Below, piece by piece: positions 9,503 to 22,167 of a stretch of DNA of 64,000 nucleotides. Position 1 is the stretch's first letter. Each line of letters starts with the position of its first letter. The notes beneath the pieces were generated by a model. The model was not told where the DNA came from and made no database searches. It saw only the letters and a program-made list of their open reading frames with translations. This DNA is from Monocercomonoides exilis PA203 (Eukaryota; Protista; Preaxostyla): assembly GCA_001643675.2 (NCBI GenBank), contig LSRY02000024.1:62001-126000 (forward strand). Direction: 5' to 3'. The position numbers and the translations under genes were made by a program.

Positions 9503-9865
9503 GGATGGTTACAATTAATTAGTTATTTATTTTTAGAAGTTCTGATTCGTGATGATAATATTTTTGTTAATATTTTCAGTTGTTTTGTATTTATGTTTCA
9601 AAAGTTAAATATGTATTAATAATTGTTTTTTTGCGAATTTTTGTTGTTTAAGCAATTATGTCAAACATTTTTTATAATATCATATCAATGTTTATAATTT
9701 TTTTAAATTTGATTTGAGTTTTCTGATCTTTTATCCATTTCAAATTTCTTGGGAATAAATCTCTTGTGTAAATCTTGAGATTTATCGCCAACTTACAGTA
9801 AGCTGGGCATTCTTACCAGCTTTTCAAATTAATTAACTTATTTTTCTGTTGTAAAAGTTGCATAA

Positions 9866-12800
9866 ATGGGGGGAGACAGTTCAAAAGCCCTTCAACAGAT
9901 GATTGTGAATAGTGGATTTCATTTACCGGCACAACCAGTTCAAGGCATCGAAATTTCTCTTCCCCCGCAATTCTTTTGCAAGAAATATTTTCGACGCTTA
10001 TTTTGCTTATGGAGTGTGGAAGAATCGCCAGAAAAATGGAAACCTGTTTCTCAAGGATGGTATTTCTTTTTTTTATTTGTAAAGAAAGATAATAATTTTA
10101 TATCTACTTGGACAGCTGCTATATTCCAACTCTTGCTGATCTAGGGAAGAGAATTCGTGTTGAAATTTCACCACAAAAGTATTTTACCAAAGAAAAAGTT
10201 TATCCAAAAGATGCCTCTCAATCGAACAAATCTTACCTTTCAGATTTTTCAATGTCCAAGGCATCATTGCGTTCCATCATTCATGGTGAAGATCGAGACT
10301 TTATGGATCGCTTGTTGCTTAATAGTCAGGTTTGCATTAGTTTTTGTGTTCAAATAGTTTGCATTATTTCTTCAAAACAGTCAAGGGCCCCTCAAAACCA
10401 GTTCACAAATTTGCGATGCGTGCGCAGCAGGTCTCGTGGAATTATGCTTTTTACTTTTACGACCGAATCCGACATCAAAAAGCGCTGGATGAGTGCGATG
10501 CTGAAGGAGAAAGAAAGGATGCTTGAGCACACGAACACGATGATGGGGGGCAAGCTGAGACTGAGAGACGATGTGGATGTTCTGCCTGTGACAGACAAAG
10601 TGCTCTATGCGGTGCACGGAAAGCCAGTCTTTGTTGAGGAGAGTGTGGGGGGTGTGATATCAAAGGAGGAAGGGATAAAGCTGATGATCAGAGAATGGGT
10701 GATGAAGGGAATTTATAACGAAGCAAGGATTTCTTCAAGGAAAACTAGGAATCTTTCAAACAACCCTCAAGTCATATCAAAATCCAGTGTCCCACAATCT
10801 TCGTCTTTGCCGGCAATTCAATCGCTTCCATTATTCGACGTGTTTTTCAAATCGACGCTTTTTGCGCTCGATTCGCTTTTTTCCTTTTCGGCAAGCGACC
10901 ATCTTTCTGTTCTGTCGTTCAATTTCAATCCAAATCAGATCCCGCCCATTTTTCCTTTTCTTCAAAAAAGTTTGTCCGGAAACGCAGGAAAAGTGAATGA
11001 TGGATGTTTTAAAGGGTCTTATTTTAGAAGCGAAAAATCAAAGGAAAAAGAAAGAGAAAAGAAAGAAAAGAAAGGAGAAAATGCAGAAAACAGAACTGAT
11101 GAAGAGAATATTCCATCATATTTGTATTCCCCACAAAATTCTCTTCTTTCTTCTTCTCCATTAACCCTATCAAAACCTTCATCATCATCAATACCATCAA
11201 CATTATCTTCATCTTCCAATTCTTCTTCTTCTCCTTTTTCTTCCACTTCGCCGCATGTCATTCATCCAAACGATCATTTCACTCGAACTCCTCTTTCATC
11301 TCACAAAACACTTCAAAATTCTTCTTCTTCCTCCTCTCTCTTTTCTCAAGCTTCTATCAGAATTCATTCACCTTCTTCCTCTTCTTCTTCTATTTCTCCG
11401 ACATCTTCTATTTCTCCGATTTCTTCTTCTTCTTCTCGTTCCAATTCTCCTCCTTCTGTTCTGTCAATTTCTTCTTCCTATTCAAATTCTAATTATTCAA
11501 ACAAAAATAACAATATTAACATTTCATCATCTTTTTCTCCTTTATCTTCTTCTTCTCTCTCTTCTTCCTCTTCCTCTTCTTCTTCTTCATTTATTTCTTC
11601 TTCTTCTTCTCCTTCTTCTCTTCCCTTCCCTCTCCCTCTCTCCTGTCTCCCTCTCCCTCTCTTCTCCTCTCTTCTTTCTTCCTTCATCCACTCCCTTTCT
11701 CCTTCTCTTGTCTCTCTCCAGAATATTCCGGCAGTCGACGCTTATTCCCTCGCCCGCCTCCTTTTTGAGGAATACGAAGGAGTTTTCTTGCTGGACGGAG
11801 GGGTTGATAGAGAAGAGATAAGAAATAATTTTAATAATATTAATGTTTATAACAAATATATAGAAAATATTGAAGAAGATAGAGAAAATATTGAAATGGG
11901 GAATTTTCAAAGAAAGAGGAAAAGAATTGATAATGAAATGGGGAATATGAAAGGTGCTTATTTAGGAAGTTCGAAACAAGAAAAGCAACAAAAAAATATA
12001 AAAAATGACACAACATTTTCATTTTTAAGCAGAAATGTTAGGAAGAAAGCGAAAGATGGCAAAGAAGCAGGAAGAATTAACCAGAAAGAATATAACAACA
12101 GTACTTTCATTGAAGAATCAGAATCAGAAGAAGATTCTTATGATGATTATTTTGGAGAACAAGACAAATTTCTTAAAGAAGAAACAGAAGATGATTTAAG
12201 TGAAGATGAAGAAGAAGACATCGACCAAATGGAAAGCCTGCCAAGCGAAGAATCTTCTTCTTCTGACTCATTTTACTCTGAAAATTCATTTGCAGGAAAA
12301 AATGGTCTTTCACGCCCATACTCCGCATTTCAGTCGCCAGCAATGCGAATGTCCCAAATTAGGAACACTCAAGCACAGAACATCCGCAGGCAAAAAAGAG
12401 ACATTACCAGCGACCCATTTTATTTTTCTGCAAAGAAAAGACAATACAAATCCTCCTCCTCCTCTTCATCTTCTTCATCTTCTTCATCTTCTTCTATTTC
12501 TTCTCCCTCTTCTTCTTCTCCTTCTATTTCTTCTTCTTTTGGCGTCTCACGTGCTCAGAAAGGCCATCTTATTTTCTTCAAGCGCGAGGCATTCCGCCTT
12601 GTGGATGAGCCAATTGCACTCGATTTGTCTGAAATGTGGGTGCCGGAAAACAAAACAGCAGAAAAAGAGAGAGAGAAAGGAGAGAAAGGAGAAAAGGAGA
12701 AAGAAAAAGAAAAAGAAAAAGAGAAGGAATCAATTGAAGGAGGAATAAATAACAGCAATGTTTCTGATTCACAGACTTCAAATGTCACATCATCTTCTTC

Positions 12801-14772
12801 CTCTTCAACTTCTGTTAGATTATTTTCTGGACTTCCAAAAATAAAAGCATTGGGATTGTTTTTACAGCCTTTAATTCCAATTTGCAATTCTTCCTCAAAT
12901 TCTTCATCTTCTTCATCATCTTCTTCTTCCTCCTCCTCCTCTTCATCTTCCAATCAAGATATCCTTCCATTCATTTCTTCTTCTCCACGTCATCCAAACA
13001 TCTCCTGCTTTCCTTCTTCTTCCAATTCAAATTCAAATTCTTCTTCTTCTTTCTTCCTTCCTCGCAAATCCCCCTCCTTCGACCCTTCCTCTCTCACCCT
13101 CCCATTCATTTTTCCGGCAGATTCTTTATCTGCAATGTTTCTTTTGGGTGTGCTCTATGCGAATGACTTATTAACCCCGCCAATTATGATGAGCCTTTTA
13201 TTCGGAATGAACGCGCAGGAAAAGAAAGAAGAGCAGAAAAGAACAAGAAGATGGCGAAAACGCTATAAAAGAATGATTCAGAGCGAAAAAAGAAAAATTA
13301 TTCCGAAAGTCGACTTGCGGAATTATGGGCTTGCCGGCAAAAAAGATGTGCCCATATTTGCAAAGAAGGTTAGAAGAAAAGGAATAAACTATGTGAATCC
13401 AACCTTCTTGAAGAGTTATAACTCAAATTTGAGTTCTTTTAATTCTCCTGTTTCTTCTTCTTCTTCTTCTTCTGTTTCTTCCTCTTCCTTCTCCTCTTCT
13501 TCTTTAAATGCAACAACTTCTTCTTCCATTTTTAATTCTCAATCAAAACAAAATGAACAACAGCAACAACCAATGGACATCAAGTTGTTTTATAGAAATC
13601 TCGAAGAAGACACAAATTTCTGGCAAAAAGACGATTCTGAAATATCTTCATCATCATCTTCTTCTTCTTCCTCTTCTTCTTCTTCTTTATCTACCTCTTC
13701 AATTTCATCAAAATCATCATCATCTTCTTCTTCTCCTTCTCGTTCTTCATCCTTTTCACGTTCTTTCGCTTCATTTCATTCACTTTCCTCTTCTCCTTCT
13801 TCTCATTCTTCATCAGAAGAAGAAGAGAAAGAAGAGGAAGAAAAATTAACAACATCAAAAATTGATAACAATTTCAATGAAATTTCTTCTTCTTCAACTT
13901 TTTCTTCTTCCAAACACGAAATTCATAATAACCCCAATAATAATAATATGATTCTACACAAACATCGTCATCACCATCATAAATATAATAATAAAAATAC
14001 TTCCTTTTCTTCTTCTCTTTCTTCTTCTTCTCTCTCTCCCTCTTTCCTTCTCTATTCTTCTCTCTCTTCTCTTCGCTTCTTCTCTCCCAAACGCATTCTA
14101 ACCCTTCTTCCCAACATCATCAACCACATCCCCCTTCTTTCTCCTTCAAAAGAACAAAAAAACAATCAAACAGAAAACATCCTCTCATTCGAATTGAGCG
14201 AACGAAAAAAGTTTTTCGAGGCAAAAGAAATGGAATTCATTCAGGAAGAGCGCAAAACACACCAAGTCTTACTCGCCGTCTTCTTCACTGCCCACGAACT
14301 TCCTTTGGATGCTGATCCGACCCTTTTATTGGACACAAACCAGGAAATTGTCCGGAAACGCCATCTGCCCATAATTCCCCCGCTCGTCGCTGCCGGTAGC
14401 AGTTTTTCCGGCGCCGGCAAAAATTCCGGAAAAATTGCCGGTAAAAGTGCAGGAAACAAGCGCCGGAAAAAAAATTCCGTGTTTCGGGAGGCGGAGGAAT
14501 ATCGGGATGGAGAAGAGGAGAAATACGGGGCGAATTCGAAGGAAGTCAGCAAAAGCAACATTTCGCGGCGTGTTCGGGTGGAATTGACGCCTTCTACTGT
14601 TGTTGGGATGATCGACAAGTCGATTATGCCGAAGATGCCGAAGCTGGGGCCTATTTGGGAAGCGCGAAACGCGGAAGCGAGCAGAAATTTGTTTGATGTC
14701 CAACAACAAGGATCTAATTCATCATCAACTTCTTCTTCTAATTCAACTCCTCCTCTTTCTCCTTATTCCATT

Positions 14773-14811
<39 letters not shown>

Positions 14812-17800
14812 CCCTCTATTTCTCCCCTCTCTTCCTGCTCCACTGCCTCTCAACGTGTCCTCACGCGCTCTCAAAGACATGAGCTAATCATGCAATTCAT
14901 CATGAATTATGGCCCTTTGAGCAGAAAATTCCGCATCTGCCCGTTTTCCCTCGAAAAGCCCATAAATCCGCTTTCTTTGGGATTTGAGATGGGGAAATTG
15001 TGGGAGAAGGAGAAAGGAAAAGTGAATGAGGAGTTTGAGAGATGGAAGATGTTGGATAGAAAGAAAGAGAATGAGAAGAAGAAGAGAAGAGAAAAAAGAA
15101 GAGAAGAAAAAGTGAATGAAACATCAAAAGATGTGATTCTTCAAGCAAATTCATCATCATCATCATCATGTTCTTCTCTGTCACCAAAATCCACCCAATT
15201 ATCACTCAAACAACACTCAATCCATCATCATCATCATCATTCTCATCATCTTCACTCACATAAAACTTCTCCTTCTCCTTCTCATTCTTCTTCTCATTCT
15301 TCTTCTATTTCATCATCAAAAACAACAAAATCAACTTTTATTTCTTCTTCTTCTTCTTCTCCATCATCTTCTGCACATTCTTCCTCTTCACATTCCTCAT
15401 CCTCTTCTTCTTCTTCTTCTTCTTCTTCTTCCTTCTCCTCTCTCCTTTCCTCTCCTTTCCTCTCCTTCTCTTCTCGCCACTCTCTTTTCCTCTCTTCTTT
15501 TGCTCTCTCAGAAGCAGTCAAACACCACTTCATCTCTCCCAACAGATACAGAGACAGATTCTCTTCGGTTTTCCCCTTTTATTTTTCTTCTCCTTCTTCT
15601 CTTTCTTCTTCTTCTTCTCTTTCTTCTTCTCTTTCTTCTCCTTTTATTTATCCTTCTCCTTCCTTTTCTTCCTCTTCTTCTTCCTCTTCTTCTTCTTCTT
15701 TTCTCTCTTCTCTTTCTCTCTCTTCCACTCAAAATTCTGCCATTTCCAGTTCTTTCTCTAAACTCCTCATAGGCTCCTCCCTCGCCCATGTATTTGATCC
15801 TAAGCCTTCTCATTCATCATCATCTTCTTCCTCTTCTTCTTCTTCTTCTTCCCCTTCTTCTTCTATTTATTCTTCCTCTTATAATTCTTCTTCTCTTTCT
15901 TCTTCTTCTTCTTCTTCTTCTCTTCCTCCTCTTCCTCCTCCTCCTCGCCCCATCCCTTCTCTCCTCTCCTTCGCTTACTCCACAAACAATCCTCCTCCTC
16001 CTTTCGCTTCTTCTTCTTCTCTCTCTTCTCTCTCTTCTTCTTCTTCTCTCTCTCCTCTCTCTTCTTCTTCTTCTCTCTCTTCATCATCTTCTTCTCCTCT
16101 TCTTCTTCCCACTTGCCCATTGTTCCTTGTTTCTGCACTGTTCTGCGGAAATTCCGAAAGCAGCGAAGACTTCCGTGTTTTGCAGGTGCTTAATTTGGCA
16201 TCACAAATCAAGAAACAAACAGACCGAAGAACAAACACAGAATTTGAGGAATTTGAAGAAGGATTTGGGAGTTCTAATGGATCTATTTCATCATCTTCTT
16301 CTTCCTCTTCTTCCTCTTCTTCCTCTTCTCTTTCTTCCTCCTCCTCCTCCTCTTCTTCTTCTGTTTTGTCTGCTCTTCCTCCTTCTTCTTTGACTTTCTC
16401 TCAGAAAACGGCCAAACTCATTCAAAATGCTGTTTTGTGCCACGAAAAGCTGAGCCAAAAGGAAGAAACACACAAAACAGATTTTTACTCGCTTTTGTCT
16501 CCAAAAAAGAAGAAGGACAATTCTTTGGCTTATTCTCCATTTCGATCATTGACTTCTTCTTCTTCTTCTTCTTCAATTTCTTCTTCCTCTTCTTCCTCTT
16601 CTTCTTCTCTTCCTTCTTCTTATGTTCCCTTTTCATCCCAATTGCCCGTCATTATTTGTGGAGACTTAACTTCTCATCGTTTTCCCTCAAAAACATCACA
16701 AAAACTGAAAATTTCTCAAAAAATAAGAAAAAACAAAGGAAATCCAAAAAAGCATAATAATAATAATAATAATAATAATAAATTTGCCTTTGAAAAAACC
16801 AATTCTCCATCTTCAAATTCTCCTTCTCTTTTCTCTCCTTACAAATTGAATCCTCAACCTTCTCTTCCTTCTCCTTCTCTTTCTCTTTCATCTTCTTCCC
16901 TTTCTTCTCCATTCTCTCCTTCTCCTTCTCCTTCTCTTCCTTCTCCTTCAGACACCATCCTCACCCAAACCGGCCTTGTTCTCACAAGCCATCCGTCTCT
17001 CTCTCATTCTGCTCTCCTTCATCGCATCCTGTCTTCCTTCTCTTCCACAAAATCCTCCTTTTCAGAAGCTCATATCCCCCTCTTCGCTTTTGCCACTTCT
17101 TCTTCTTCCTCTTCCTCTTCCTCCTCTTCTTCATCCTCCTCCTCATCTTCTTCTTCTTTAAATTCTTCCTCCCCATCTTCAATTAGAAATACTTCTGATA
17201 ACTCATCCTCTTCTTCTTCTCCTTCCTCTCCTTCTCTTAATCCTTCTTCTTCAATCAATTCTTCATTAAATTCCTCCTCTTCCTCCTCCTCCTCTTCTTC
17301 TCCATTCACTTCTGCTGGCTTAGATGCCTCTCTCACAATGTCCCCTGAACCTTTCCTCACAGAAACAATTAAACCAGATGAAATATTCAATATAAACACT
17401 CAAAATCTTTCTTCTTCTTCTCTTTCTTCTTCTCGCTTTTCTTCATCTTCTTCTCTTCTCTCCAATGAAATGTCTTTTGATCCGTCCAACTTTGGCTCGC
17501 CTTCTTCGCTCATTCCGTGGCTGCGCAGTTGGAACACCCCGCCACTCGAAATGAGAGACATGACAAGAAGAATAAGTGCAAGAAGAAGAAGAAGTAGAAG
17601 AAGAAGAATAGATGGTGGAAATGGAATAAAGAAGGTGAATGTAACGAAAAAGAAGGAGACACAGGATGAGGAAAAGAAGGAAAAGAAGGAAAAGAAAGAA
17701 GGAAAAGAAGAAGATGATGTTGGAATTGCATTTTCTTCGTTTGCTGAATTGGACAAAAACGGATTTTGGCGAAGAAGATGGTATGACGATTGGATGGAAG

Positions 17801-20800
17801 TTGATGACATGAGAGAAAGAGAAAAGGAAAGAGAAAAAGAGAGAGAAATGTTATTACAGAATTTGAATGAAAACTCTGTTAATTCTGATGTCTCACACAC
17901 AAAAGAACAGCAAATAGGACTGAAAAGTTGGAGTTCGCTTGATTCATTCAGAGAATCCGAGCAGAAAAACGGGAAAGAGCACATTTTGCGTGTTGTGGAA
18001 GAGAAGCTGAAGGAGAAGAGGAAGAAAGAGAGGGAAAACCAGAACGAGTGGGAGATCGTGGAAAATCGGGTGAAAAACAGAGAGATGAGGATCAAACGGA
18101 AGCAGAAGGAGCTGAAAAGGCTGGAGAGGTGTTTGGAGAGGGAGATGAGGCGGAAAGAGAAGGAGGAATTTATGCGGATGCTGAGAGACAAAGAGCCAGT
18201 GACGGAAGAGATGAAGGAGCAGATGGAGATCAAGAAGAAGCGGAGGAAGGAGAGAAAGAGGAGAAGGAGGAAGGCAAGGAAGGAGGAAGAAAGGAGAAGA
18301 AAAGAGGAGGAAGAAAAGAGGAGGAAGGAGGAGGAAGAAAGAAAGAAATGGAAGAGCTTACAAGGGAATACCCTGCAGCCAGTGAGAAATGGAGAGAAGT
18401 TGGAACAGAATGAATATGATTCAGATACATATGCAAAGAACACATCGTTTCCGCTTTCGATGGAATCATTGAGGCATTCGAATGAAGCAAATTTGAATAC
18501 AAGTATTTTGGATGGAGATGTGAGTTTAATAGGAATATGTGATAAGAAATATAATGAGGGATCAGACAATTATTCAGAAAGTGTAGATAATAACAATATT
18601 TTGAGAGAAGACGAAAATGAAGATGAAGAGAGAAGAGAAATGAAAAGGAAGAAAAATTATTTCAAAAAATTGAAAAAGAAAGAGATGAAAGAGAAAGATA
18701 CAGAAAAAAGTGAGATTGACATTGAACTTATTGAAGAAGAAGACGAAGACGAATTAGATCTGGAAATGGAATTAGAGTTGGAAAGAGAGTTGGAATTAGA
18801 AGATGAAGAAGAGGAAGAGGAAGAAGAAGAAGAGGAGGAGGAAGAGGAAGAACAATTCAATATGGAAGGAGAGATTGAAGACTCACTCAAAAGAAGAAGA
18901 AACAGTGATAGATGCGAAGAGAAAGAGGAAGTGAGCGATTATTCAAAGCAACATTTGTTGAATTGCAGCAAAAGCGACGAGAAAGAATATGGCTACGATG
19001 AAGAAGTTGGAAAAGAAGAAATAGATGAAGAAGAGGAAAAGAAAACCGCAAATTCTAAAATGGAAGAGAATGCTGATCAGAGAGATGAAGAGGATAAAAT
19101 GGGAAAAATGAAATTCAACGAAGATTGCAGGAATGGAGAGGAAGGAATTAAAGCAATGCATCAATTGAAAGAAGAAGATGATGATGAAGGAATAAAAAGA
19201 GAATGCAATGAAGAAAACAGTTCAACAATTTCCACATTCCCAATATCACCTTCTCCTTTAAATGAAGCTTTATCACCATCCACATCGTCTCCCCTGGATT
19301 CCGGTTTGCCAAGCGAAGTGAAAGTGAACACAGGCACAAAAAGCAAAGAAACAATGGAAAATGAAATTGCAGAGGATGATTCCACATTTACAAAAGTGCA
19401 ATCACAGGCACAACCGGTTGGAGCAATATTAACTCAGTCCTCTCCCCACACCCCGCTTTCTGTACGCTCTTCTATTTCCTTTTCTTTGAGGCATTCACCT
19501 GCTGCTGTTTCTATGCATTCCTTTGGCTCTCAGCCAGAATCAGCTTTTGCCTCTCCCTTGTCATCGCTTTCTTCCTCCTCTGCTTCCCCATTGACTCAGT
19601 CGGATACAAATGTACCGTCATCATCATCGAACTCTTCTGCTTTTTCTTCTGATTCCTCTTCCAGTTCTTCTTCACAGCTTACTCCGCCTTCTCGTTCACC
19701 TTTATCACTTTTTTCGGCTTCATCATCCTCAATGTCTTCCTCTTCCAGTTCCTCCCGCAAATTATCCTCGTTTTTCTTCCTTTCTCCATATTCTTCTTCT
19801 TCATCACCGCATTCAGAGCTTCGCCCTTTGTATTTCCAACCGTCGTTGCGTGAAAGACGGTCCCGCATTCACAACGAATTTGACAGGTTCAATTTTTGCA
19901 GACTGCTTTCTAAATTCAACATGCACCAGATTTGCTGTATATCACACCCGAAATACTTCTGTTTTCCAAATGTGGGAGTCAGTGGAACATGGTTTGGGAT
20001 TGATGACGAAGTGTTTGTGGGGATTGACTCTGCCTTGAAGAAAGAGGAGCTAACAAAGAAATGCCAAATGGACGAGACAAATAATAGATTCAACAAAGGG
20101 ATGTGCATTGAAAGCGATAATAATAATGATGAAAATAGCATATGTAACATCAAATGTGTCGAATCAGTTGAAGAAACATCAGAAGTACAAAGTGAGGATA
20201 AAGACAAAAAACAACAAATAAATTCTGAAAAAACACAAACAAATGAGTCAGATCATCCCATTTTGCCCTCAATTTCTTCCGCTTTATCTCTTTCTTCAAG
20301 CGCATCAAAAGATTGTGATTCAAAATCACCAAGCATTCATCCAATATCTCAGTCAAGGCAACACAAATCTCATTCTTCCAATGAATCGCCTTGCCCAGCA
20401 GCTATTTCTTTGCCTCTCAATGTATCCCATGACAAGCTGATTTCTTTTTCACCGTTTTATACCTCTCTCTCGTCTTTCAGGATGCTCTTTTGCTTGCACC
20501 AGAATAATGAATTACCAGAACCAACATTTTTCGCTGTTGACAAAAAGAACTCCACTTCTCGCTTTTGCAGTCCATTCACAATTATTCCGCACAAGTTGTT
20601 TCGATTATATTTCAGTCATTTTCTTCATCCACCATTTACTCAGTCTATTTTTGCAGTGTTTATTCCACTTCTCTTTCCGCCTCCTCTTTCAAATCTTAAT
20701 ATGAAATGTTCCTCTTTTGGTGCACACAAGCCATTCTCAAGCTCACGCAAAAGCAAATCATCAACTCTTGCTCTTTCTCATTCTCCCTCTCTTTTGTCTT

Positions 20801-22167
20801 CGTCAAACACGCACCCATTCACGTCTGCCACCTCTGGAATTATTTATTCTCCAACTGGTAGTGCACCATTGAATGCATCACAAATGAAACAATCCTCCGC
20901 TTTCACTCATTCTCACTCTTTTTCTAATTCCCTTCCTCCAATTTCTTTTTCCTCATTTGTTAAGCCTTTGACCATGAAAAACAGCACAAAACAGCTTTCA
21001 CCAACTTCATTTTCATTTTCTCCCTTGTCTTCAATTGAAATGTCATCTCCACATTCTTCTCTTAAAACTAATTCGTCCATCTCATCCAAGCAGTTTGATG
21101 AATCTCCCCAAATATTGAATGCCTTTTCTCTTTCACCCTCTCTTTCTGGCTTGCTTTCATCAACTGTTTCTGCTTTGGCATCTTCTTCCTCCTCCTCCTC
21201 AAAAGCTACAAAGAGAAACAAATCATCCTCAATCCGTGATTCTCGATTTCCGAATAGAAAGAGAGCAAAATTGTTTTTTTATTCGTCGCAGTTGTTCTCA
21301 TCATCATCTTCTATTTCAGACTCATTTTTGTGTCAGTCTTCTTCAAGGATCTATTTCCCATCCAGCCCATCTATAATCATCCAATCTCCGATGCAGTTTT
21401 GGGATGTTTGGGACTATGTGGGTTCTTCAGCTGCATTAACATCTTGCGCAATGCCATCCAATCTGAGAAGCTCTCAATACCCAGAGAAGAAGCATTCATC
21501 AGATGATTGTGCGAAATTGCCAACATTCACAACTTATCCCTCTGCCTTGGATGCATCACTTCTCAAAGCACCAACAAGCAACCAGATATTATGCTCCCAT
21601 CTTCTACATCCAGTTGCTTATATCCATTCTGAACTTAGTTTACTGCCTGCTTCAAGTGCATGTAAACAGATGAAAGCTGATCCATCAAATGAGTTAAGCT
21701 TTATCATTCCTCAATCTGATGCTCAGTTGGACTTTCACAATGAAGGTTCAAATTCGTCAATTCAGAATTTTTCTCATTCGTTCAGCAATTTGCAATCACG
21801 CTTGCACTTCAACAGCAATTCTTCTAATTTAAAGGAAGTAATGGTTGAAAATGATAATGAATGTGATTCTGAAACATTATTTAATCCTTTAAAGCTTCTC
21901 CAACTGGTACTTCCTTCCTCGATGTATGTATCTTCAAGAACAAACAGCTACGTTTCAACCTGTTCTTCAGAAAAACGAACAAACGATAATATTCATTTAC
22001 TAAGCTTGTCTTCTCCAGCGATTGCTGTCTTCCATCGCTATTGGGACCAACCATCTCATGCAACATCTCTTCTTTGCGAAGCAGCTGCAGCGAAAGTCGG
22101 CTCGATTGAAGAGTCTCAAGCAAAGTTAGCAGAGGAATCTAATGGGTGCATTGTCAAAGAATGCTAA
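9866..22167 (+). CDS. Giant (~4,060 aa) Ser/Glu-rich protein carrying dispersed, degenerate CCR4/PDE12-like (EEP) motifs; intron 10060-10115 and probable in-frame intron 10330-10380
   Basis: 12-kb stop-free ORF. Exon 1 (9866-10059) splices to give CCYIPTLADLGKRIRVE. Ordered motifs follow: SVLSFN, GHLIFFKREAFRLV, LFLVSALFCGN..SEDFRVLQV..L, PVIICGDLTS, WDVWDYVGSS, CSHLLHPVAY. CDS is confident; family call is moderate. Confidence 0.8.

Follow-up and report, generated by a model that had tools for sequence, protein, structure and literature searches.

PDE12 and the plant CCR4a/b-type 'CCR4 homolog 1/2' proteins (PF21171 or zf-C6H2 together with PF03372) are compact, catalytically complete proteins of ~550-620 aa in which an N-terminal 'W..V...Y.PT..D.G..L..E' segment is followed by an EEP nuclease domain. 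We find the same order of motifs in a single gene of the protist Monocercomonoides exilis PA203 that occupies positions 9866-22167 (+) of a 64,000-nucleotide window of genomic DNA (contig 19:62,001-126,000), which we analysed against the whole M. exilis assembly (82,301,135 bp in 101 contigs; PMC8767320). Unlike PDE12 and CCR4a/b, this gene and its relatives encode giant proteins of 2,100-5,800 aa that carry loops of up to 1,580 aa, have lost most of the catalytic residues, begin with a myristoylation-type Met-Gly start and go unrecognised by Pfam models. Profile comparison of the family with the PDE12 and plant CCR4a/b subgroups gave E-values of 1e-8 to 9e-11 for each, and we consider it very probable, taking the case as a whole, that the window holds one gene of a family of giant proteins derived from a CCR4/PDE12-type EEP enzyme with a PDE12-like N-terminal module.

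The window gene is not a one-off. A genome search with its N-terminal piece revealed four further loci, and when exon 1 and the 'YIPT' module were used as profiles the number rose to eight in all (window gene included). We take these loci as a lineage-specific family, of eight giant genes or more, in M. exilis. The main frames run to 4,016 codons in the window gene on contig 19, 2,537 on contig 47 (C47), 2,097 on contig 2 at 1.48 Mb (C2), 2,080 on contig 14 at 1.71 Mb (C14), 5,757 on contig 25 (C25), 3,918 on contig 27 (C27), 3,833 on contig 2 at 0.61 Mb and 2,866 on contig 52 (C52). C14 corresponds to MONOS_404, whose public label is 'uncharacterized' and which carries no Pfam domain. A word search with residues 60-380 of MONOS_404 returned only the protein itself and no relatives outside this genome, within the limits of its length window and word index. 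An E-INS-i alignment of the paralogs contains ~18 conserved blocks that occur in a common order in all copies, with unalignable low complexity between them. Further, when the window open reading frame (ORF) was compared with a profile of four other paralogs, trimmed to conserved blocks, it reached a chain score of 136 bits against 22 +/- 2.7 bits for shuffles (z ~40), a result that held at every insertion cost tried. On these sequence scores the window gene belongs to the giant-protein family without doubt, and the short ordered islands that an earlier note on this stretch had picked out are non-random, being conserved in common order in seven paralogs. That the locus might be a pseudogene or a chance ORF was considered and rejected, given eight intact frames of 2,080-5,757 codons.

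To compare the family with known enzymes, the paralog alignment was trimmed to conserved columns, which were chosen without EEP information, and the concatenated columns were aligned by hhalign to a template alignment of 55 CCR4/PDE12/ANGEL-type proteins. Five paralogs together matched the EEP domain at 99.3% (E = 1.4e-20) over 276 columns, from the first strand 'SYN' to the last strand 'SDH', and the four paralogs without the window gene still matched at 99.1% (E = 7e-19), whereas reversed or column-shuffled queries gave at most 0.4% (E = 0.14-0.74). The earlier note had read the islands as a CCR4/PDE12-type nuclease and had suggested a search for an EEP match with the low complexity trimmed out; the homology behind this reading is supported, and the window gene alone on the same trimmed columns matched at 94.9% (E = 4e-8). 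Single-block profile matches were also obtained for the 'DI.CLQEV' unit at template positions 163-218 (E = 4e-4, or 5.5e-5 without the window gene), for the 'CGD' strand with the helix that comes after it, at 348-387 (E = 1.9e-5), and for the last strand at 453-474 (E = 0.12), and these block-by-block matches fall at collinear template positions. The untrimmed full-length paralog alignment aligned to the EEP template in one block only. We regard the homology of the island set to the CCR4/PDE12-type EEP domain, from first strand to last, as decisively supported by these profile comparisons.

Other lines of evidence point to the same fold. PF03372 was the sole Pfam family reported for paralog C14, with 17.7 bits (E = 0.0032), below the cut-off of 24.5. 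Language-model look-alikes of MONOS_404 residues 1-520 were clusters with EEP and PDE12-like_N domains (score 0.92; the ten best matches all from one family), and the nearest cluster carries PF03372 and PF21171. An AlphaFold2 model of the first half of the domain of the contig 2 paralog, computed with paralog pieces as the alignment, showed a core with pLDDT of 82-95 and the order strand-helix-strand-helix-strand-strand. Foldseek matches of this model in the PDB, among those listed (to rank 50), were all EEP enzymes, including CNOT6L, CCR4-CAF1, TDP2 and ANGEL2, with E-values of 0.01-0.17. The structural evidence, which comes from predicted models, is consistent with an EEP fold and falls short of decisive. 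Overall, we have high confidence in the EEP homology and in the exploded architecture of the family.

In the window gene, a ~300-residue EEP core persists as a dozen short, collinear, conserved islands that correspond to core strands and helices, all read on the forward strand. The loops between them, 150-1,580 residues long, are low-complexity sequence, in part Ser-rich (encoded mostly by TCT) and in part rich in Glu/Lys/Arg. Those islands that had been quoted before are indeed found where they were placed (YIPT at 10120, SVLSFN at 10906, LIFFKR at 12568, QVLLAV at 14263, LFLVSA at 16120, IICGDL at 16651, FWDVWD at 21397 and TSNQIL/LLHPVA at 21574-21618). EEP strand 1 lies in the island 'DHLSVLSFN' (10843-10959). 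The next island, at 11665-11796 ('LVSLQNIP', 'YEGVF'), comprises helix 1, strand 2, helix 2 and strand 3, with the DI.CLQEV unit at 11707-11787; its LQ strand is separated from strand 1 by ~265 residues, and it is to this unit that the pLDDT of 82-95 in the paralog model applies. This island, whose 'LVSLQN' at 11707 is the DI.CLQEV strand, had been missed in the earlier note. Positions 11627-11664, directly before it, code for a Pro/Leu-rich stretch. Some 260 residues beyond 'YEGVF' comes the strand island GHLIFFKREAFRLV (12553-12627), with 'GHLIFFKR' at 12562, equivalent to canonical 'DG.A.F.R..F'. A further ~565 residues lead to the island 'HQVLLAVFF..PTLLLD' (14257-14334), likely the strand before the NTH strand, which was matched by eye to the paralog block 'MRALGMFL..TPPLL' and not placed by multiple alignment. 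After another ~620 residues follow the strand and helix of canonical 'NTH..P...DVKL.Q' ('LFLVSALFCGN..RVLQVLNL', 16120-16209), and ~160 residues later the 'P.I.CGDFNS' strand ('LPVIICGDLTS', 16618-16701), which lies within the 'CGD' profile match given above. The island GLVLTSHPSLSHS (16960-17034) represents the helix and loop following the GD strand.

The C-terminal part of the domain is reached only across ~1,580 residues, from the GD strand to the island IIIQSPMQFWDVWDYV (21373-21420), which is equivalent to the canonical 'L.SAY' element and contains 'FWDVWDYV' at 21397. Next come 'LPTFTTY' (21517-21537), equivalent to the canonical 'P.FTNYT' loop, and APTSNQILCSHLLHPV (21568-21624), equivalent to the canonical 'G.LDYIF.S..L' strand. 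About 150 residues beyond this strand, the last strand, 'SPAIAVFHRYW' (22012-22053), takes the place of canonical 'PSDH..L.A.F', where the paralogs read SHRPVFTVYHRFW. By comparison, the equivalent gaps in compact enzymes are roughly 10-60 residues, as judged from the alignment consensus. It is in this region that the earlier assignments of individual elements had to be changed. The 'WDVWDYV' segment, taken for LDYI, is actually the 'L.SAY' element that precedes the 'P.FTNYT' loop; 'ILCSH..' / TSNQILCSHLLHPV (21574) had been read one element off and belongs to the LDYI strand; and ILCSHLLHPVAY, taken for SDH, is likewise the LDYI strand (SDY in paralogs, SNQ here), the SDH strand itself lying at 22012-22050. 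The largest loop of the window gene, between the GD strand and the 'L.SAY' element, also holds family-specific blocks such as 'PLEMRD'; one of them, 'NTPPLEMRD' (17521-17571), lies outside the canonical EEP domain and is conserved among the paralogs. The largest loop of the paralogs contains further blocks ('MTKEER..PYK', 'WDPFG' and 'RDPALVPIFDP') that occur in no canonical EEP domain. Possibly, the family-specific blocks of the largest loop constitute an inserted module.

Relative to the canonical catalytic set (N / E / H / D-N / D / D-H), the window copy retains only the first, metal-site Asn in 'SVLSFN' and the Asp of the GD strand. Elsewhere it reads LQN in place of the catalytic Glu, Leu for the NTH His, GDLT with Thr for Asn, and SNQ with Asn for the Asp of the Asp-His pair, and the last strand has lost both the catalytic His and its neighbour, so the suspicion that the catalytic positions are altered proved correct. 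The full set is found in none of the eight family copies. Wherever the island in question could be placed, the copies have other residues for the NTH His, the GDFN Asn and the SDH Asp (several islands were unplaced in the contig 52 copy, as was the LDY island in the contig 2 copy at 0.61 Mb). The metal-binding Glu of the 'LQE' strand, E240 in CNOT6L, is kept in one copy out of eight, C14, a copy that has also retained the Asp of both the GD and the DY motif as well as the last His. That last His is present in five of the eight (C47, C2 at 1.48 Mb, C14, C25 and C27) and gone from the window copy, the contig 2 copy at 0.61 Mb and C52. Within the family, catalytic erosion is greatest in the window copy. 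The substitution E240A leaves CNOT6L unable to deadenylate, and Nocturnin depends on the Asp-His pair (PMC6158716). Conserved hydrophobic core strands alongside drifting active-site residues are the pattern of a pseudoenzyme, and judging from these residues it is likely that catalysis has been lost in the family.

The gene is predicted to consist of a short first exon, a 56-nt GT-AG intron and an open frame that runs to 22167. Exon 1 (9866-10059, +) comprises 64 codons plus 2 nt, begins with MGGDSSK, includes the 'LP..PVQGIE' island and ends in '..W..VSQG'; it is conserved in eight loci with E-values of 1e-11 to 3e-34. Intron 1 (10060-10115, +) was read from the sequence as a phase 2 GT..AG intron with a stop in the exon 2 frame, and the paralogs examined have the same exon break. 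No stop interrupts the 4,023 codons of the frame 10096-22167 (+), which lies in DNA of about 38% G+C within a genome of 37%. The 12-kb open frame described before therefore stands from 10096 onward; it does not extend from 9866 as one read, since the 56-nt intron comes between the start at 9866 and the long frame, and the P..PVQG island has a 5' exon of its own. Exon 2 (10116-10329, +) encodes the 'YIPT..DLG..IRVEI' motif (10120-10173) of a PDE12-like/A9-type N-terminal module, which is found at eight loci in the genome. The 51 nt at 10330-10380 (+), bounded by GT..AG, in frame and stop-free, are probably a second intron to judge from the paralogs: at this same 'SQ|GT' position C14 and C25 carry an intron that contains a stop, and the 17 residues encoded by this stretch are absent from C47 and C2. 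The open frame alone would thus probably overstate the window protein by those 17 residues. In the copy on contig 2 at 0.61 Mb (minus strand), both N-terminal introns are apparently stop-free and in frame, with T-rich stretches after 'VSQG' and 'NTQV', so that its raw ORF is continuous from the MG start. The largest paralog, C25 (contig 25:1,656,000-1,674,499, minus strand), has its islands spread over ~5,200 residues of an uninterrupted 5,757-codon frame.

The main exon of the window gene (10381-22167, +; stop codon at 22165-22167) contributes ~3,928 codons, in which the conserved islands are set in low-complexity sequence rich in Ser and in Glu/Lys/Arg. With both introns removed the predicted protein has ~4,064 residues, of which 24.7% are Ser, in good agreement with the Ser-rich protein of ~4,060 aa that had been described. 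Ser is encoded by TCT in 53% of cases, poly-Ser forms 27 runs of at least six residues, and low-entropy windows hold 47% of all residues. An antisense ORF of 389 codons at 17400-18569 (-), in a Glu/Lys/Arg-rich tract, was rejected as the mirror image of a low-complexity coding tract. Of the sampled 31-mers of 9700-15699, 76-81% were present in four RNA runs of one study, which places at least the 5' half of the gene in RNA libraries.

At the N-terminus, the family copies share a 64-residue exon 1 with 'LP..P[IV].G[IV]E' and 'W..[VI]SQG', followed after intron 1 by a 'Y[IT]PT..D[IV]G..L.VE' motif, which hhalign aligned to the N-terminal region of PDE12/CCR4a-type proteins over 18 columns at template positions 83-100 (E = 2.6e-4). 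The end of exon 1 aligns weakly just ahead of that motif in the PDE12-like N region (E = 0.21). These alignments suggest that the family has a PDE12/plant-CCR4-like N-terminal module at the level of the motif only; the likeness claimed in the earlier note is supported to that extent. Between this motif and EEP strand 1, the window gene (10381-10700) and its paralogs have a conserved region of ~200 residues with 'SAPPSQF', 'G.IEF' and 'ES..PV.SL.E'. Language-model look-alikes of the window N-terminal piece were Ig-type (Ig-PH) domains of plant AIR9-A9/SCAB, with a low score of 0.8, and serve as a lead only; a literature search for AIR9 together with PDE12 found no paper. The MGxxxSK start is invariant in five aligned copies and in C2b, with Pro at position 3 in one copy. 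N-myristoylation requires a Met-Gly start and a small residue at position 6, in the PROSITE-type pattern G-{EDRKHPFYW}-x(2)-[STAGCN]-{P}. The MGxxxSK start fits this pattern, and the genome has an N-myristoyltransferase (NMT) gene, detected as an NMT_C match on contig 29 (E = 3e-24).

We propose that the ancestor of these genes would have been a CCR4/PDE12-type EEP enzyme already carrying the PDE12-like N-terminal module, and that its loops probably grew by trinucleotide-repeat slippage. Several results weigh against this proposal. Neither the whole window protein nor ten of its islands matched Pfam even at E <= 10, and PDB sequence searches returned poly-Ser noise only, both with the whole window protein and with the paralog profile. 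The first 292 residues of the long frame had no match in a word-indexed library or by HMMER over 1.84 billion representatives. A genome scan with PF03372 passed over the window locus and flagged only three ordinary CCR4-type loci elsewhere, and one with PF21171 gave no match at the window locus or elsewhere, in a scan whose own control was silent too. Plain hmmsearch of EEP profiles against the window ORF yielded only weak fragments. When a generic CCR4/PDE12 profile was chained along the window ORF with an insertion cost independent of length, it scored 68 at a cost of 10 bits against 40 +/- 4.5 for window-shuffled sequence, and no better than shuffles at 15-20 bits. Together, the empty direct searches and the weak chain score put the window gene alone at the edge of detection. 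These failures are what one would expect of an orphan low-complexity protein whose islands resemble EEP motifs by chance. The islands are nevertheless conserved and collinear in the seven paralogs, the family profile finds EEP at E = 1e-20 while its negative controls stay clean, and the window gene by itself matches on columns defined by the family, which leaves chance resemblance scarcely credible.

Accepting descent from an EEP enzyme, the islands may or may not still fold together. No full-domain model could be obtained for any copy, each EEP domain being longer than 1,200 residues, and AlphaFold2 performed poorly on the window N-terminal piece 10381-10992 (pLDDT 44), which also counts against our proposal. 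Given these results, the distance of up to ~1,580 residues between neighbouring core elements and the window copy being the most eroded of the family, the protein could be essentially disordered, its pieces serving as separate short binding motifs or being remnants of decay. Against this, the conserved pieces are buried hydrophobic strands and helices and not surface motifs, the first half of the paralog domain was modelled with EEP topology at the high pLDDT given above, and the eight long intact frames argue for selection; we think disorder unlikely. A still active but highly derived EEP hydrolase (nuclease or phosphatase) with changed active-site residues, in at least some members, is a different possibility, to which the residues kept by C14 (MONOS_404) lend some weight. 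Substrate switches are also known among EEP enzymes, Nocturnin and plant CCR4C being NADP(H) phosphatases and ANGEL2 a cyclic phosphatase. But no copy has the full catalytic set, three of its residues are replaced wherever their islands could be placed, in the window copy the Glu, the last His and the Asp of DY are gone as well, and loss of the Glu by itself is enough to inactivate CNOT6L (E240A; PMC6158716), so continued catalysis appears improbable. Rather, under the pseudoenzyme reading that we favour, the islands would still pack into an alpha/beta sandwich, as expected because buried strands and helices are what is conserved, and the protein would no longer cleave RNA and would act instead as a binding or scaffolding module. 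It may be anchored in membranes through N-myristoylation of the conserved MGxxxSK start, with the kilo-residue disordered loops as spacers or as platforms for phosphorylation or interaction. This picture of a scaffold at the membrane is tentative and we hold it as rather doubtful. Short of an even chance, too, is the proposition that about a dozen islands, scattered along 4,000-5,700 residues and interrupted by individual loops of over 1,500, do come together as an EEP sandwich, in a myristoyl-anchored, catalytically dead relative of PDE12/CCR4 that grew to eight giant copies in a eukaryote lacking mitochondria and possibly tethers RNA or nucleotides at membranes. If true, this family would be the extreme case among the discontinuous single domains described so far.

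With the EEP assignment, eight or more giants of a model amitochondriate eukaryote that had been 'uncharacterized' and without Pfam domains, MONOS_404 among them, would acquire a name and a fold, and it bears on the extent to which low-complexity growth can stretch a compact enzyme fold whose core strands remain under selection. Such genes escape standard domain scans entirely, while paralog-guided trimming combined with profile-profile comparison recovers them, which in turn bears on how much of the 'dark' proteome of repeat-rich protists consists of known folds in disguise. A literature search for Monocercomonoides together with CCR4 found no paper.

The same genome also contains canonical CCR4-type genes of the same superfamily, MONOS_6713 (contig 6, 440-504 aa, matched at 100% identity) and a 1,202-codon gene on contig 14 (~812.9-814.7 kb), both of which, unlike the giants, retain every residue of the catalytic set and score above the Pfam cut-off. 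Like the giants, the 1,202-codon gene has insertions within the domain, here of tens to ~200 residues and some of them Ser-rich, and the unusual motif spelling 'CGDL'. From its sequence it apparently represents this inflation at an intermediate stage, in an enzyme that looks active. This gene (contig 14:811,358-816,232) also has a Gln/Pro-rich tail. Homopolymer-rich low-complexity inserts in surface loops of conserved folds are familiar from Plasmodium and Dictyostelium, where they usually measure tens to a few hundred residues, whereas in M. exilis a single domain has been stretched ~12- to 18-fold and the stretching recurs in eight paralogs. Among non-catalytic EEP proteins, EEPD1 resembles the giants in having an EEP fold whose proposed nuclease activity is called 'enigmatic' and which is kept for DNA clamping (binding) and not for any demonstrated cleavage (PMC12988330); it differs from them as a compact animal protein of another subfamily with no giant loops. 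The kind of protein described here is therefore already known, both as EEP pseudoenzymes and as low-complexity inserts in conserved domains; what is new is the degree, a domain stretched 12- to 18-fold in eight paralogs and invisible to standard scans.

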